Source of the DNA: Dimorphilus gyrociliatus
Taxonomy: Eukaryota; Animalia; Annelida
Assembly: GCA_904063045.1 (NCBI GenBank)
Contig: CAJFCJ010000011.1
Span: forward strand, 434,001-498,000
DNA length: 64,000 bases
Direction of reading: 5' to 3'
Shown here: in pieces, positions 1,771 through 22,964 of the stretch
How the letters are laid out: every line of letters begins with the position of its first letter
How positions within the stretch are numbered: the stretch's first letter is position 1
Position numbers and translations under genes: made by a program
Notes under the pieces: model-generated
The model's input: the letters and a program-made list of their open reading frames with translations, nothing else
Database searches by the model: none
Told to the model about the DNA's origin: nothing

Positions 1771-4980
<3,210 letters not shown>

Positions 4981-5744: not shown

Positions 5745-7643
5745 TATTAGTATATCAAGATAATTATATATGTTATACTATAAAAAGTGGAAGGTGGAAT
5801 ATTATTTGTATGTTATCTATGATAGTTCTTCAATAATTTGTATAATTTATAGGAAGAAACCTTTTTTTTTCTTATCTAGGCGGAGTAATCCGATCAATAT
5901 ATGCAATTCTGTTTATTGTTTCTATCAGTTTTAAAATGTGAGCGAATATAACACAATTGGCCTATTAAAATTGTTAATAAACTTAAAAACAAAAAGTTTT
6001 TGTTTTTTTTTTAAAAAACAACTTGAAACAAGCAGTCAAAGATAATTAATTTTTTTATTACTTCTGATAATCTGTTGAAAAAAAATCTTAGGCCTACGAG
6101 ATAAATACATAAAATAGATAATACAAAAAAAAATTATCTTTATTATGTGAAAAAAGGAATATATTCGGTTGAAATTCGTCTGATATCACGAAGTGGGTGT
6201 TGTTTTAAGTTTAAATTCTGTTTGTAAATCTTGAATTGTGAGTTCAGCAGCGTGTAAAATGAATTGTTAAAAGAACGGAAAATGCACACTGAGCTAAAAT
6301 AAGACTAGACGATCTTTCAGGCAGAGAAACAGCCCAGTCATTTCCTTACTTAGGTTTAATAATGAGTCAATGGTGAATGGGAATTTTTCTTATGCCATTA
6401 TATTAAAAACTTAAGGAAGCAAAAATGAATTGACATTGGACGTAGTCTAGAAGAACGTCTAATGCTCTATGAATGAGAGGTGGTTAAACGAAAGCGTCTA
6501 ACATGTAGAGTTAATTGATGATTTTTAGCAAACACCATAGCGTTGCTTTTTAGTTTATAAAAAACGAATTAAGCCCGACCTTTTTAGTGAAACCTTCTCG
6601 GTATAATGATTCACAAGTTAAAATAGTTTCATTAACCATTCTAGGTCAACTAGAAAGTATTGAAACATAAGTCAAACCTAAACTTTTATTATTTTTTATA
6701 TAATAGTAATTTGTTTGTGAAATGTCCAAGTGGTATTCTGAAGATATGAAAATGGCTATCATAAGACGCGATTTGATATCAAAAGCAGTACTACTGTCTT
6801 TTATATAGTATTTAAGTCTAATGGATTCTGGTTTCTTTTCCTTCCTTTCCTGTTCTTTTCTTCTAACTTTGTAGAGCTCTTTCAAAAGATGGCCAAATCA
6901 GACATCTTTAGAAAAAATATGATCTTTTCTATCGTTATTATTTTTTATTATAATTCTAAGACTTTATTCATTTTTTAATTTCTTAATACTCTACATCATG
7001 TTCTTGACCTAATTAGTTTAGTTAATTTTACAAAATTTGCCTTCTTTTCTTGAAGGACGCTTGAGAAACTCTTCGAGTGGAAGATTCTTATTGTCTTTAT
7101 ATAAAGAAAGTTTAAGTTTGAAAATACTATCTGCTAACAATTTATTTATTAAAAAGTAGCACACTTTCTAATAGTAAAATTTAAGGTTATTGCAAAACAT
7201 AGAATGAATATAAGACATTTAAATTGTATAAAGACACATTTTAACTTTATTTTATATTTTACCAGATAAAATAAATATTTTTTTAAGAGAATGATTGATT
7301 GATTTAGCCGGAAAATGTTAACCTATTGAACTACGACCTCATCTAATCGGGCCTCCATGAGAATGTCTTTGAAAATACGATCGTTAACTCTCAGATATCT
7401 TTACCCGGTAGGTGGAGTTTCGCAATCTATATAAGAACTAATGCAATGTTATTGTAAAGTTTTTATATCTATCTACTTAAAAATGAAAACCCTATCATTT
7501 ATTCGAATTAACAGAAGAGGGAATATTTATTTTTATAACTTCTTTTAAATATTCTAATTTCAATAGATTAAAGCATTAAAAATTTAAAATTAAATAATTG
7601 AAACCAGTTTTCGCTTGACAACTTTTCCGTTTTGGTTAAATGT

Positions 7644-7653
7644 AAAATGGCGG
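7644..7653 (+). promoter_or_regulatory. YY1-like promoter motif upstream of the AlkD-like gene
   Basis: AAAATGGCGG about 60 nt before the predicted ATG at 7715; matches the known YY1 consensus AANATGGCG. Confidence 0.45.
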
Positions 7654-7714
7654 TTGGAGGAAAATCATATAATTGAAATTAAATTTACTATCAATTTAAT
7701 CAATGCTTCTAAGA

Positions 7715-8858
7715 ATGGCAAGCGTTAGCCCAAAAATATTAAGAAAAGTTCCCACTTCCAGGAACGTGTCTAAATCTTCTAAGGTGATAAAATTAGTAAA
7801 AAAAACAAGTTTAGTACGTTTATTGTTTACTACAGGTTAGAGCCACTAGAAAGAGTAAAAGAACAAGTTCAGAACACGAAGTGTATGAAAAAGCTATTAA
7901 GCAGAAAAAAAATGTATATAGAAAAGAGTAAATTCAATCTTGTATTTCAATAGAAAGAATTAAGAATCTTTTTTGTAGGATAAATCTTGTCCAGAAGATT
8001 TTATCAAAGTTTTAAAAGGAGTTTTTAAACAAAATGGAGAAGCCAAAAAAAAAGATTTTATGCAAAAGTATATGAAAGAAAAATTTCCCGTATACGGATT
8101 ATACGCACCAGAAAGACGTCAATTGCAAAAAGAAGTATACTTTTATAAGCATGAATTAATAAGATGCAATTTTAAATTGGTACTTGTATTTGCATTCAGT
8201 TCATGATCGAGCCCGATGACAGAAATGAAATGTACGAAGTTCTTAAACTCTGTTGGAATGACGACTACAGAGAAATACAATATTTCGGTATCGATTATGC
8301 AGTTAAATTTCTAAAAATATTTAGTGGAGTAAATGCCTCAGAGGGTGAGGAATCTCTGAAGTTGTGCTATTTTTTAATTTCAACCAAATCCTGGTGGGAT
8401 ACTGTTGATTTACTTTCATCCAAAGGTAGATAGGGTAGTAGCTATATATTGCCAAAATATATGTCATCTTTTGTTTCATTATATAGTTGTCGGCCATTTA
8501 GTTAAGACTTATCCCAATCTTCAACCAACGATGGATGAATGGTGTGAAGACGAAAATATGTGGATAAGAAGAGCGTCTATATTGTATCAACTTAATTATA
8601 ATAAAAATACTGACTCGGAAATTCTATTCAGGTATATAACACAATTCTATGACAAAAGAACGAAAGGATATTCCAATATATTATAGGTACTGCAAAACGC
8701 TTGCTAATGAGAAAGATTTCTTTATAAGAAAAGCCTTAGGCTGGGCATTAAGGAACTATGGACGATTTCAAGGGAAAATTGTTAAGAACTTTGTAACAGA
8801 AAATCAAGATATTCTATCTAATTTAACGATAAAAGAAGCCCTTAAGAATATCAAATGA
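7715..8858 (+). CDS. alkD: AlkD-family (HEAT-like repeat) DNA alkylation repair glycosylase, 6 exons
   Basis: Five phase-consistent GT-AG introns (7784-7835, 7914-7978, 8135-8199, 8426-8486, 8632-8686). The spliced protein contains QKYMKEKFPVYGLYAPERRQL, YREIQY, TKSWWDTVD, NMWIRRASILYQLNY and EKDFFIRKALGWALRNY, the signature motifs of bacterial AlkD. Confidence 0.9.
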
Positions 8859-10222
8859 AATATTTTATTGGCACTTATTAAATCATTCAGTTTTTAATAC
8901 TTTATCAATTTTACGTAAAAATAAACAAGTTACTTAACAACGCAGTAGATTAACTTTTTATGTATACAGTATTAGTGTGTATTGCAGTTATATAAAAGCA
9001 ACGATAAATAAACAAGGAATAAAAACTTAATGGAAGATGAGTTAAATATATTAAGGCAGAGTTAATTGTGACTGTACCGGCCCATAGTTTGCAATTAACA
9101 ATTAATTCCGGCTTTTAACTGACTAATGTAACTTAAAAGGTGAAACTAATAGAAAAACCTGTTTAAAAACTCTGTTCTAACCTTTCAATAAGCACTTTGT
9201 ATAATATAGCTTATTAACTGACTTTTTTTGAGATATTGATAGCTTGTTTAGAGTCTAATAGGAGGGTCGATTCATACAGAATTATTGACGCTTTAAAAAA
9301 AATAGACTGGGAAAGAAAGCTCTTATGAGAAATTGATAGGCCTTAGCAGACCTATTCTTTAACTGACACTAATCAGTATTATTAATCTAGATTAACCAAC
9401 GGTACAAAAGACTTTATCACTCGCAAGTAATTCGAAATGAAAAATTTATCAAATATACACAGTTTATGTTGTGTTTATACATAAAACATGCATATTTTAT
9501 ATATTGAATATAATAATATATAATAAATTAATTTTATATAGTATAGTAAAATTTCATTAACAATCACAAAGAATAACATAGGCATTGTTTATTTTCTGCA
9601 TGAGTATGTATAAAAGTAAAACGAAAAACATGGACGGAAATATAAACATAGCATCATGGAAAAAAAGTAAAATAAATACAAAATATATATAAATATATAT
9701 GATAAAAAGTGGACAACAAATTAAAGTAGAAAGATTTTGGAATTATCACGGTAAGTTTATGAGTCTTTTTTTTTTAAATTGTCTCTTTTATCTATTACAT
9801 TACAAAAATAACATAAAAACAAGATATTTTAGGGCGAGATTTACGGAAGGAATGAGGAGAGTAGGAAGAAGTATAATTAAAGGTAGAGTGTTAGAAGATT
9901 TAGAGAAAAAACTATTATTACAGTCATTGTTGGCTTTTTTTTGTTTTTTGTAGAGTTCAGTAAGTGTTGAGAATTTTACTAGAAATATATTTAAAGTTGA
10001 ATTTAATTCTAATAAATTAACGATTCTCCAATGTCGGCATATTTCGTAAGTTTTCCAGTTTTTTCTCTCTTTCTCATTATTTCCACTTTCTACCCTATTG
10101 ATCTTCGAACCCCTGCTTGTAAACATTTCCTCACATTTTTACTTCTCATAATTTGAGAGCCGAATTTAAAAAAAATAGTCTTAGGGGGGCTTAAGGAAAG
10201 ATAGTAATTTTTCCAGCACCGT

Positions 10223-13200
10223 CTATTTACCCGATGGTATGGATTTTTTGCGGCCACTTGTTGTCGCACCAATATTTCCATGCATACTTCCGGTACTAAC
10301 TCGCCTGTCTCGATCTTTAACGTTGCTGATGCCAGTTTCTAGACTTGATCCTGTACCGGAACCTCTTCTTGAACTAGTTGACGAATTAGTACTTTGAAAT
10401 GATACTCTTGAACCAGTAGCTGCTGGACGAATTCCGCCAGTAACTCTTGATCCTCCTTTTCCTGCACTACGTTTGTCCTGTTTATTTGTATTTTGCTTAT
10501 TCTTGGCATTAGCCGATTCTTTGCGAGATGCTTTTTCTTCCTGCTGCCTTTCCAATGCTTCCGCCTCTGCCTGAGAAATACGAATAATGCTTATTTAAAA
10601 GACACTAATTTAAAGCCTATTATATATGTGCGAACATACATTTATTTTCCTTTATATCTAACGTGTGACGATTGCATTTTATTGAAGAATAAAAAGTGAG
10701 AATAACGAAGAAAATTGAAAAATTTATTAATATTTGTGAAAGATTCTCCCGCTTTATAATGGGCGAATCATAGAAAAATCTTATCATTTTAGTGTTAGTT
10801 CACTTGTAGGAGGGCTATTTGCTGAAGGTTTTTTGCTTAGTAGAATTACGAAGTAAATAGGATAATAGAGATTTAATTTTAAATATCGTATAAACCCATA
10901 GAAAAGATATAAAATAGTTTTCACTTACCACTTCCAATATTTTCCTCTCCTCCTCTTCTTTCTTAGAATCAGCAGCTTCTAGAGATCCTTTAGGTGTTCT
11001 TTTTGTTAAACTTTCCATTACTGGTTTAGTTCTATCTAATATAATCACAATATTATTTATGGAAGCCACGACATCTTCATCAGAGTCCGACTGTAATTTT
11101 CGAACAACGCTTTCCAGTTGAGATAAAAGAGGCCTATCAGCTGGCAGACTTAATTGTGATTTAACAGCTGGCAATAATTGACAAACTTTCATACGTATAT
11201 TAGGTACCGAATCGCTACATTTAAGTAAAATTTCATCTATCAAGGAATGTTGACGGAAGAACAATCTGCTATACAATTGAAGAACATGATGGCAAACGTC
11301 GAGGAATAGAGCTCTTTTACGATAATTGTCACTTTTGGCCAAGTCGGTTTTTATTTTTCTATAATATTCTTCTTTCATTTCCAATTTTCGACTATACCTA
11401 AATGATAGAATAGAGATATAAATATCCTGTTTATAGTGATTATAATATTATTAATGTAAACAACAATCCAAATTCTCCGTAGCTTAATAATAAATATAAT
11501 TCTGGTGAAATTTACCTGTTGTTTATAGGGAATAGACCTATATAAATAGGATTACAGGCCTACGCTTTTATATTAAACTTAATAAATGTTCTGTTTAGTA
11601 GTAGTTCGATAAAAAGTACTTTCGATAGCTCAGCAACATGCTTGAACAAATAAATAGCACTATATTACTATCGATTATATCCTACAATATGTTTGTTTGT
11701 ATCTTTCGTTTTTTTCCAGGATTTAAGAAAAGGCATATTACAAACTAACAGCGTAGATTAAAGAAATATTTTTACCTTAAGAATATTAATAATGTTCGTG
11801 CAGTTTCAACCATAACTGGTAGAGCTCTATGAGAGAGAAGTTCCTTATATACAGCAGGGATTAACTTCGCACCGATTTGATCAGATGAGAATATTTTATG
11901 ACTGACTTCGCCCAATATTTTCATGTAATTCTGTTGACTCCTCCAATCGTGGCCGTTCATTAACGTTGTTAACGAATGAAAGGAAGCTGTCAGGACTTCC
12001 TGAGAATGGTCCCATTTTCCTCCTTCGCATCCCAGAGTGAGATAAATTTTAGGGCAATCTTTCATCAAACATTGTAAAACAGTTATATCGCTGTCCTGTT
12101 TATAAAAGTAAAGAAAAACTGCTATGCTTAATATTTTAAAAAGTGAAACTTTCGAATTACCTTCAGTAAATTTATAAAATCCAAGGTTAAAAGACTCTGA
12201 TAATTTGAAGGAAGTGCAGCCAGTATAGATCCTATACATTTTGCTGCTGCTTGTTTAACATATGGACTTGGATCATTGCATAAACTTCTATAGCAACTCA
12301 TCAATTCAGATTTATAAATTTGTCCTCCTAGTGCTTTTACCATCAGCGGCAAACTTTCCACACAGAAACGTCTACAGCATTCGCTAGGCGTTTCTAAACA
12401 TAGGCCCTCCAATCCGCCAAAGAGCTGTGGCTTCGGTGAATGCTTTGCATTGCATGGTAATTTTGAAAGACGTTTAAAAGCATCAATAAATAAGCGTTTT
12501 TCATCATCACATAGTTGAGAAGATAAGTAAAAAAGAAAGACTCCCAAATTTTTAGCCAAACCACCCACAATATTTACATCATCAGATTCTAACATTTTAG
12601 AACTGATTTGAAAAATTAAAGGATAAGCAGATATCTTTAAAGTTTCACTGTCTAGAAAAGGGAGTAATTTTCCAAAAGAATCTAGGGCAGCATTTCTGAC
12701 ATGACTCCTTTCATCCTTAGCCAACTCTAATAGCTCGGGGAAGATCATAATCTTTTTTAAAGATAATTATTTATTAATTTCATTTGATAAAATGTGCTTT
12801 GGTATTGTTTTATCAGTTGTTATGATATGATTATATAATATTAAAAAGGCTTTTTCAGCTATGTTATTTTACGTGGGTGTTCATCTAACATTCAATTTTA
12901 CTTATATTTTATTTACCTTTATATTTTCGGGACTTAGACGCTCGCCTATAACCGGAAGTTCCAAACACATTGTTTGCCTAACATCATGCTCGATATCTTG
13001 ACACAAAGATTGAATTAAGCGCCCCAATTGGGTTTTAATAGTATTTTGATCCAATTTCTTCGAAATTTTTCCAATAACTTTACAACAAGTGATCCGACTC
13101 GATACAGGTTTTGAGATGTCAGACTTCTTCTTAATAGGAGGTAAAACATCTTTTAAAAGAACGTCTATATTCAATACATCGATTGCAATTAGCAGAGTTT

Positions 13201-21887: not shown

Positions 21888-22964
21888 ATGATGAATTCAA
21901 CTATGACGGAAACTTTTCCGTCATATACAGAGATATTAGCAACTTTTTATGGTATTGTAGTTTTATTCGTTTTAGGAAGTTTTGGAAATTTTTTGACAAT
22001 AACAATACTTATTCAAAGTGGAAAATTTGTAAAATCAACAAATATCTTTGTTTTCAACTTAGCAGTTGCAGATCTTGTCGTTTGTTTTACAACTGTTTTT
22101 GATACTGTTTCTTACTATGCTCATGATATAAGTCATTCCGTATGCAAATACGTTATGCCCTTTTATTTTGTCGCTGCTCTTACTTCTCAACTGAATTTGG
22201 CTGTAATTGCTCTAAATAGATATGTGTTTATACTGAAGGCAAGAGACACTTATGAAAAATATTTCTCAGATAAATTATCAATCATTATATGCTTTTGCTT
22301 GTGGATTTTCAATATTCTCTATACTTCTTGGGCCTTCGTATTCACTGAATTTTATTTCGTCAGAGAAAGTTATGCATGTCAACTTAAACATCATGAAAAT
22401 ACTAAACATTTTATGGCTATAACTGGGTCGTTATATTTGCTGTTAGATGTTGTTGTAATTGCTGTTATATACTTTTTAATATTTAGAGGAATAGTAAAAT
22501 CTAAAAAGAGGACACAAGTAGATCCTTCAACTGCATCATCTAATATAAACTCAACGAATGGTATGTTTCAGGTTTAGATTTTGTAAATTACTTTTATTAA
22601 TGTAAATTTCTAAGCTGTTCACAGTACATCAAGTCCTGCGAAAATTAAAAGTAAGCCAAAAAGAAAATCTGGTAATCTTAAGCAGATGTTTGCGATATGG
22701 TTCGTTTATGTTATTCTTAGCACCCCCATAGCGATTGAATTCGGAATAAGATCTCAACTTAACGTTCCCTTGCTATATGACAGGTAAACTGTTTGGAAAA
22801 TAAGTAAAAATGCGTGTAATTGTTTGAAAATCAACAGGTTCAGCAATAGCATGCTAAGAACGAATTCAGCTGTTAATGTACTAATCTATGCTTGGACAAA
22901 CACGTTATATAGAAACTTATATAAAGATTTACTTAAGAAGGCTTTCAGCAATCCTTGTGCCTAA
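21888..22964 (+). CDS. Orphan class A (rhodopsin-like) GPCR, 3 exons
   Basis: GN in TM1, NLAVAD in TM2, NRY in place of DRY, and TM7 NSAVNVLIY. Intron 22561-22614 (phase 1, in ICL3) and a phase-2 intron before TM7. Stop at 22962-22964. Confidence 0.9.

Follow-up and report, generated by a model that had tools for sequence, protein, structure and literature searches.

The AlkD family of DNA glycosylases is found in all domains of life (PMC4433238). The W109A, D113N and R148A mutants of AlkD lose all activity, which identifies Arg148 as essential (PMC1874660), and damage recognition is mediated by Lys29 (K29A) and Tyr27, both located on the B-helix, which is missing from the inactive paralogue AlkD2 (PMC4433238). 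In 2018, Hecox-Lea and Mark Welch described a "metazoan AlkD lineage" that vertebrates and ecdysozoans lack; their tree contains Capitella, Lottia, Aplysia, Biomphalaria, Lingula, Branchiostoma, Saccoglossus, Nematostella, Trichoplax and Amphimedon together with Capsaspora, a choanoflagellate and further protists, with the AlkD genes of rotifers lying outside this lineage as separate acquisitions from bacteria (PMC6264785). The present work deals with an AlkD-type gene at positions 7715-8858 of the forward (+) strand in a 64,000-nt window of the genome of the annelid Dimorphilus gyrociliatus (contig CAJFCJ010000011.1, positions 434,001 to 498,000), the window being the whole stretch of DNA analysed, to which all coordinates given without a contig label refer. 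This locus is very probably the single D. gyrociliatus orthologue of the vertically inherited metazoan AlkD lineage, namely a spliced and expressed gene coding for a HEAT-like-repeat DNA glycosylase, the activity of which is assigned by homology.

The gene consists of six exons and five GT..AG introns and has a coding length of 846 nt, i.e. 281 codons and the stop codon, with its start and stop being exactly those given in a preliminary description of this DNA made from the sequence alone. Exon 1 (7715-7783, 23 codons) includes the ATG at 7715-7717 and codes for the first half of a basic N-terminal extension, the second half of which, including a bipartite pattern resembling a nuclear localisation signal (NLS), is encoded by exon 2 (7836-7913, 26 codons). 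Exon 3 (7979-8134, 52 codons) corresponds to the first AlkD helices including the B-helix, with the motif YMK at 8069-8077, and exon 4 (8200-8425, 75 codons and 1 nt) contains an animal-type insertion of seven residues and the motif SWWDTVD at 8389-8409. The motif WIRRA is located at 8561-8575 in exon 5 (8487-8631; 2 nt, 47 codons and 2 nt), its second arginine (8570-8572) being the equivalent of Arg148, and exon 6 (8687-8858; 1 nt, 56 codons and the stop codon TGA at 8856-8858) contains FFIRKALGW at 8718-8744 with the Trp187-equivalent tryptophan at 8742-8744. Introns 1 (7784-7835, 52 nt), 2 (7914-7978, 65 nt) and 3 (8135-8199, 65 nt) are in phase 0, intron 4 (8426-8486, 61 nt) is in phase 1 and intron 5 (8632-8686, 55 nt) is in phase 2, the median intron of D. 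gyrociliatus being 66 bp long (PMC7854359). There is a second in-frame ATG at 7703, 12 nt upstream of the start at 7715, which would add the four residues MLLR. The same arrangement of the two ATGs is kept in a close relative described below, and the ATG at 7715 has the better context of the two (A at -3 and G at +4).

All comparisons were made exon by exon, with the exons translated separately. When compared with the Pfam profile PF08713 (DNA_alkylation; profile length 213, gathering cut-off 21 bits), exons 3, 4, 5 and 6 score 31.5, 33.4, 38.2 and 53.4 bits and correspond to profile positions 4-41, 50-108, 111-157 and 160-213, respectively, in a colinear match covering positions 4-213 of 213. 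Since each of these four exons exceeds the gathering score alone, a chance match is excluded, and a six-frame search of the genome with PF08713 gave the same result. The full-length match points to a predicted six-repeat HEAT-like alpha-alpha superhelix. No NCBIfam model matches any of the exons, and the protein atlas search with exon 4 found only PF08713 fragment clusters. Bacillus cereus AlkD is the best relative of known structure for exons 3, 4 and 6. In the case of exon 5, three repeat-summed fucose-binding lectin chains rank above it, which were rejected as chance matches made up of three weak repeats (9 bits) of a stretch rich in Trp.

At the level of single residues, the stretch KYMKEKF containing YMK aligns with RYMKNHF, which includes Tyr27-Met28-Lys29 of B. 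cereus AlkD. SWWDTVD aligns with SWWDSVD of AlkD, thus providing equivalents of Trp109 and Asp113; WIRRA aligns with WLQRA, with equivalents of Trp145 and Arg148 present; and FFIRKALGW (ALGW in place of AIGW in AlkD) possesses equivalents of Phe179, Phe180 and Trp187. Trp109, Asp113, Arg148 and Trp187 are invariant in the 18 animal and bacterial-type sequences of the alignment designated A1. Because the B-helix with Tyr27 and Lys29 and the catalytic residues are all kept, the worm protein is, by its sequence, AlkD-like rather than AlkD2-like, with every residue known to matter intact. The preliminary description, which had reported an intron-containing animal gene of the AlkD family with six exons, five short GT-AG introns, four AlkD motifs and an intact active site, was therefore correct in all these respects, as borne out by the PF08713 match, by the alignments to Tyr27, Trp109/Asp113, Arg148 and Trp187, and by the spliced contigs described next.

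Public sequencing runs were compared with positions 7200-9400 of the window. A 1889-nt contig of run X2 matches the locus with zero mismatches and skips exactly all five predicted introns, and a 162-nt contig from a separate coral metatranscriptome of 2024 (run X1), covering positions 7659-7872, skips intron 1 with one mismatch. Since the genome has only the intron-containing locus, the X2 contig is read as RNA. The AlkD gene is thus spliced and expressed in the worm, with all five joints found in the X2 contig and the first one also in that of X1. The transcribed region extends upstream over 7308-7714 (+), with the X2 contig starting from 7308 and the X1 contig from 7659, and contains the alternative ATG at 7703; it is a 5′ untranslated region (UTR) at most, as the contig may fuse neighbouring transcripts. 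Downstream, transcription covers 8859-9400 (+) and the X2 contig continues beyond 9400, with AATAAA-type signals located near 8920 and 9008; this is a 3′ UTR, possibly fused with the transcript of the convergent neighbour. As a side observation, this worm or a near-identical one probably lived in the coral sample or aquarium from which run X1 was derived.

A representative search over 1.84 billion sequences with exon 4 as the query resulted in 77 proteins, and named orthologues were listed by a word search with the full-length abalone match as the query. They include molluscs (Haliotis, Liolophura, Gigantopelta, Solemya, Patella, Lottia and pectinids), annelids (Owenia, Paralvinella and Capitella), deuterostomes (Branchiostoma, two starfish and one hemichordate) and non-bilaterians, namely Trichoplax, the sponges Sycon and Corticium, and the cnidarians Montipora, Oculina and Nematostella, so that AlkD orthologues are present in at least eight animal phyla. 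The summed exon scores are highest for lophotrochozoans (chiton, abalone, Solemya and Owenia), with exon identities to molluscs and annelids of 34-62%. For exons 4, 5 and 6, animal sequences give higher scores than bacterial ones (Mann-Whitney p = 2e-6, 1e-3 and 2e-5, respectively).

To compare intron positions, five animal orthologues were aligned exactly, with splicing, to their own loci, and the introns were then compared by columns of the protein alignment. Owenia, Capitella, Haliotis and Branchiostoma have three introns each, in phases 0, 1 and 2, which occupy the same columns as introns 3 (phase 0), 4 (phase 1) and 5 (phase 2) of the worm gene, and the phase-1 intron 4 is also common to Trichoplax. 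Introns 1 and 2, located in the N-terminal extension, recur in the close relative alone and were not found in the other phyla compared. The orthologues of Nematostella (L015:2001-2684) and Sycon (L017:2001-2855) are intronless; the Sycon ciliatum gene is nested within a phospholipase C gene running on the other strand. A further animal trait is the length of the spacer separating the RE motif from the SWWD motif: it amounts to 38 amino acids (aa) in exon 4 of the worm and in 13 of the 24 measurable animal sequences (36-39 aa in 20 of the 24) and to 31 aa in 23 of the 26 measurable bacterial sequences.

In a careful unrooted maximum-likelihood tree built from 25 animal and 30 bacterial sequences, to which the worm exons were not added as rows, the 25 animal sequences all group in a single clade with a support of 83/83, which was recovered in 86% of the bootstrap trees. 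The genomic neighbourhood also bears on the age of the gene: in Capitella teleta (L012:3001-6954) and Branchiostoma belcheri (L014:2001-5884) AlkD is located tail-to-tail with MTHFD1 (THF_DHG_CYH and FTHFS domains), and this adjacency in an annelid and a cephalochordate is an old linkage. Dimorphilus has lost it, with MTHFD1 located on a different contig (C9:1196044-1198436). Together with the shared introns, the adjacency of AlkD and MTHFD1 provides structural evidence of antiquity that goes beyond the protein tree of 2018. Local duplications were also encountered, with two adjacent AlkD paralogues in Trichoplax sp. H2 (L016:1-186 and 2001-3741) and two paralogues on one scaffold in Lottia gigantea (P0089 and P0090).

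The best representative match to exon 4, with 70% identity over 83 aa, comes from genomic contigs of a close relative (Logan SRR23372229), probably another dinophilid-like worm. One of these contigs, which has a GC content of 28%, harbors the same six-exon AlkD gene (L098:2481-3702; also found in L099 and L100). The protein identity between the two worms is 44, 71, 68 and 82% for exons 3-6, respectively. The number of nonsynonymous substitutions per site (dN) amounts to 0.10-0.46 per exon, with the synonymous value (dS) being saturated or above 1.3, and the lowest dN belongs to the exon carrying Trp187. With dN in this range while the synonymous sites are saturated, the AlkD gene is under purifying selection.

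The AlkD gene is the sole PF08713 gene in the 77.9-Mb genome assembly of 349 contigs and is thus present in a single copy. Its neighbours include open reading frames (ORFs) with Pfam matches to a protein kinase domain (3154-3489, -), canonical HEAT repeats (12128-12748, -) and a rhodopsin-family G-protein-coupled receptor (21888-22577, +); for the open frames at 10223-11384 (-), Pfam gave no match. The GC content is uniform at about 28-30%, the AlkD gene with about 28% being like its surroundings, and the neighbourhood is an ordinary animal gene context. Contamination, a pseudogene and a retrocopy were considered and rejected, as the gene is located on a contig of at least 498 kb together with animal genes, resembles the host in its composition, has an uninterrupted frame and spliced RNA, and occurs at only one locus in the genome.

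The preliminary description had contrasted AlkD with the use of AAG/MPG by vertebrates and had asked whether the genome also has MPG. The contrast does not hold for this animal, as a three-exon MPG/AAG gene is located at C2:3851174-3851899 (-), matching positions 2-181 of the Pfam profile Pur_DNA_glyco. In addition, there is an intronless gene for Tag (3-methyladenine glycosylase I) at C26:577920-578432 (-), represented by a 190-aa ORF with an Adenine_glyco score of 269 bits and a GC content of about 38% within the AT-rich DNA of the worm, as well as two HhH-GPD genes. The worm thus has MPG, AlkD and Tag together, and because the genome contains its own MPG gene and also Tag, AlkD adds to MPG and does not replace it. 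The fact that all three have been kept in a strongly compacted genome argues for their non-redundancy.

Exons 1 and 2 code for the 49-aa N-terminal extension, which contains 15 Lys/Arg residues versus three Glu; the stretch encoded by exon 1 is rich in Lys, Arg, Ser and Thr and has zero acidic residues. The preliminary description had noted an added basic extension of about 50 aa, which is indeed present but turned out to be a common animal trait: an N-terminal extension rich in Lys/Arg and 26-120 aa in length, often beginning with MPK, is found in 24 of the 25 animal orthologues, unlike the bacterial proteins, which are without it. The 227-aa model of Nematostella vectensis without the basic extension may be a truncated annotation. 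The bipartite NLS-like pattern of exon 2 consists of KR, 11-12 residues and KQKK, its counterpart in the close relative being KRR, a 10-residue spacer and KKQK, and bipartite or KRKK-type patterns are found in the extensions of ten of the 25 animal orthologues. Judging by these patterns, the extension most likely confers nuclear import and perhaps extra non-specific affinity for DNA.

Enzymatic activity, substrate range and localisation of the worm protein are predicted here from its homology to B. cereus AlkD. Duplex DNA would be bound by the enzyme along the basic, concave side of its HEAT-like-repeat solenoid, and the damaged base would remain stacked in the helix without base flipping, with the equivalents of Trp109 and Trp187 cradling the deoxyribose of the lesion. 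In AlkD, Arg148 pairs with Asp113. The Asp113 equivalent of the worm protein, paired with and tuned by the Arg148 equivalent, would hydrolyse the glycosidic bond, and the abasic site would then pass to base-excision repair. The expected substrates would be cationic N3- or N7-alkylpurines, probably including bulky minor-groove adducts.

As to the origin of the gene, the preliminary description had viewed it as a fully eukaryotised bacterial-type enzyme, either gained by an old horizontal gene transfer (HGT) or retained in this animal while lost in model animals, and had called for a phylogeny and a comparison of introns. Retention fits the results well, since the introns are shared with bilaterians and a placozoan and the animals form one clade, so that no HGT is needed for this gene within animals; as a recent import the "eukaryotised" gene is at odds with the three shared introns and with orthologues in at least eight phyla. 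A bacterial gene transfer into Dimorphilus or the dinophilids that was recent or specific to this lineage, with subsequent intron gain, might be thought of since the family is best known from bacteria and the intronless bacterial-type Tag gene in the same genome suggests that transfers do occur in this lineage. Nevertheless, such an origin is extremely improbable: three introns are identical in position and phase in four animals of two further phyla and one of them in a placozoan, the animal-specific insertion and the N-terminal extension are present, the best matches are to molluscs and annelids and the base composition is that of the host, i.e. neither bacterial nearest relatives nor a lack of ancestral animal introns nor a distribution limited to one lineage was observed. 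An ancient HGT, in which the whole animal clade would stem from one transfer from a bacterium into the animal or holozoan stem and would have been inherited vertically since then, competes with vertical descent only over the deep origin, not over the identity or role of the gene, and is possible though doubtful. It would agree with the identity of 38-48% between animal and bacterial proteins, with the intronless genes of Nematostella and Sycon, and with the position of the animal clade, which adjoins a clade dominated by Actinomycetota and lies apart from the Bacillota/Bacteroidota clade that includes a sequence from the B. cereus group. However, the grouping of animals with actinobacteria is weak (84/48) in an unrooted tree and decides nothing, and homologues are also known from Capsaspora, Salpingoeca, amoebozoans, Naegleria, ciliates and green algae (PMC6264785), all of which were left out of the tree, so an older eukaryotic ancestry is equally possible.

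The assignment to a vertically inherited, expressed animal glycosylase has to be weighed against several points. Bacterial AlkDs from Actinomycetota, Bacillota, Bacteroidota and others are nearly as similar, in the identity range just mentioned, and the monophyly of animals with its 83/83 is moderate, not strong. When the worm exons were used as separate short rows of a tree, exons 3 and 4 fell within animals and the short conserved exons 5 and 6 floated near the base without being placed, so that this tree is only partly informative and was counted neither way. For run X2 no library type is recorded, which makes a processed DNA copy outside the assembly a conceivable source of its contig, and the X2 and X1 contigs give neither strand, level nor transcript ends. 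Finally, no biochemical or localisation study of any animal AlkD was found in the literature searched. On this last side two alternatives arise. The protein might be a non-catalytic HEAT-like-repeat DNA binder, as are AlkD2 and AlkF/AlkG, or might have substrates different from those of bacterial AlkD, given that inactive relatives of AlkD are known in bacteria (PMC4433238) and that the animal proteins carry the seven-residue insertion and the N-terminal extension; this is quite improbable in view of the B-helix with Tyr27 and Lys29, which is present here unlike in AlkD2, of Trp109, Asp113, Arg148 and Trp187, kept without exception throughout alignment A1, and of dN being lowest in the exon carrying Trp187. 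The extension, for its part, might target the enzyme to mitochondria instead of the nucleus or besides it. The Lys/Arg/Ser/Thr-rich stretch of exon 1 without acidic residues has a composition typical of presequences too, other glycosylases achieve dual targeting through alternative N-termini, and two in-frame ATGs are present at 7703 and 7715; but with the NLS-like pattern of exon 2 kept in the close relative and similar patterns in ten of the 25 animal orthologues, this is considered unlikely.

An orthologue of the metazoan AlkD lineage, as the locus is understood here, corrects its reading as a bacterial gene in an animal: it is an old animal gene absent from the usual model organisms. The preliminary description had valued it as the best candidate for an uncharacterised animal system in the window, and as regards novelty it claimed too much, as the animal AlkD lineage, including Capitella, has already been published (PMC6264785); it is still right in so far as the literature searched yielded no biochemical work on an animal AlkD. 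The discovery is thus a modest one, with the presence in animals reported before and many orthologues annotated as "DNA alkylation repair protein". A tentative suggestion, which we regard as rather more doubtful than probable, is that the animal lineage is a nuclear non-base-flipping glycosylase kept beside MPG by mainly marine soft-bodied invertebrates against bulky minor-groove adducts of microbial genotoxins of the duocarmycin/yatakemycin class. If so, the presence of AlkD beside MPG would be explained by the inability of base-flipping enzymes to handle such bulky adducts, and the loss of AlkD in ecdysozoans and vertebrates would mark a changed exposure or repair strategy. With its short gene, the worm would lend itself to a first test of non-base-flipping excision of bulky adducts in animals.

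Among the known systems, human AAG/MPG and E. coli Tag and AlkA overlap with the worm protein in the expected substrates, 3-methyladenine (3mA) and 7-methylguanine (7mG), and belong to the same base-excision pathway, although they have unrelated folds and a base-flipping mechanism, unlike AlkD. The self-resistance glycosylases YtkR2 and C10R5 of Streptomyces are AlkD-related, non-base-flipping enzymes which excise bulky adducts (PMC8626424); the matches of the exons to solved structures contain no YtkR2-type chain (only AlkD and EF3068), and the worm gene has no biosynthetic cluster context. The AlkD pair found in Adineta vaga, a bdelloid rotifer, likewise represents AlkD-family genes in an animal genome but is a separate acquisition from bacteria (PMC6264785), whereas the worm gene has the hallmarks of the metazoan lineage. 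B. cereus AlkD (PDB 3BVS, 3JX7, 5CL3 and others) belongs to the same PF08713 family over its full length, with Tyr27, Lys29, Trp109, Asp113, Trp145, Arg148, Phe179/180 and Trp187 kept in the worm protein. Compared with it, the worm gene has five introns and a moderate identity per aligned exon, with activity assigned by homology only, and compared with bacterial AlkDs in general the worm protein has a seven-residue insertion before the SWWD helix and the 49-aa basic N-terminal extension. The closest system is the metazoan AlkD lineage (e.g. Capitella teleta ELU03766, Lottia, Branchiostoma, Nematostella, Trichoplax and Amphimedon), with which the worm gene shares introns, the insertion and the basic extension. 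It differs from the other members in the two extra introns within the extension, which are also present in the close relative, in its location away from MTHFD1, unlike in Capitella and Branchiostoma, and in belonging to a very compact genome that contains both MPG and Tag.

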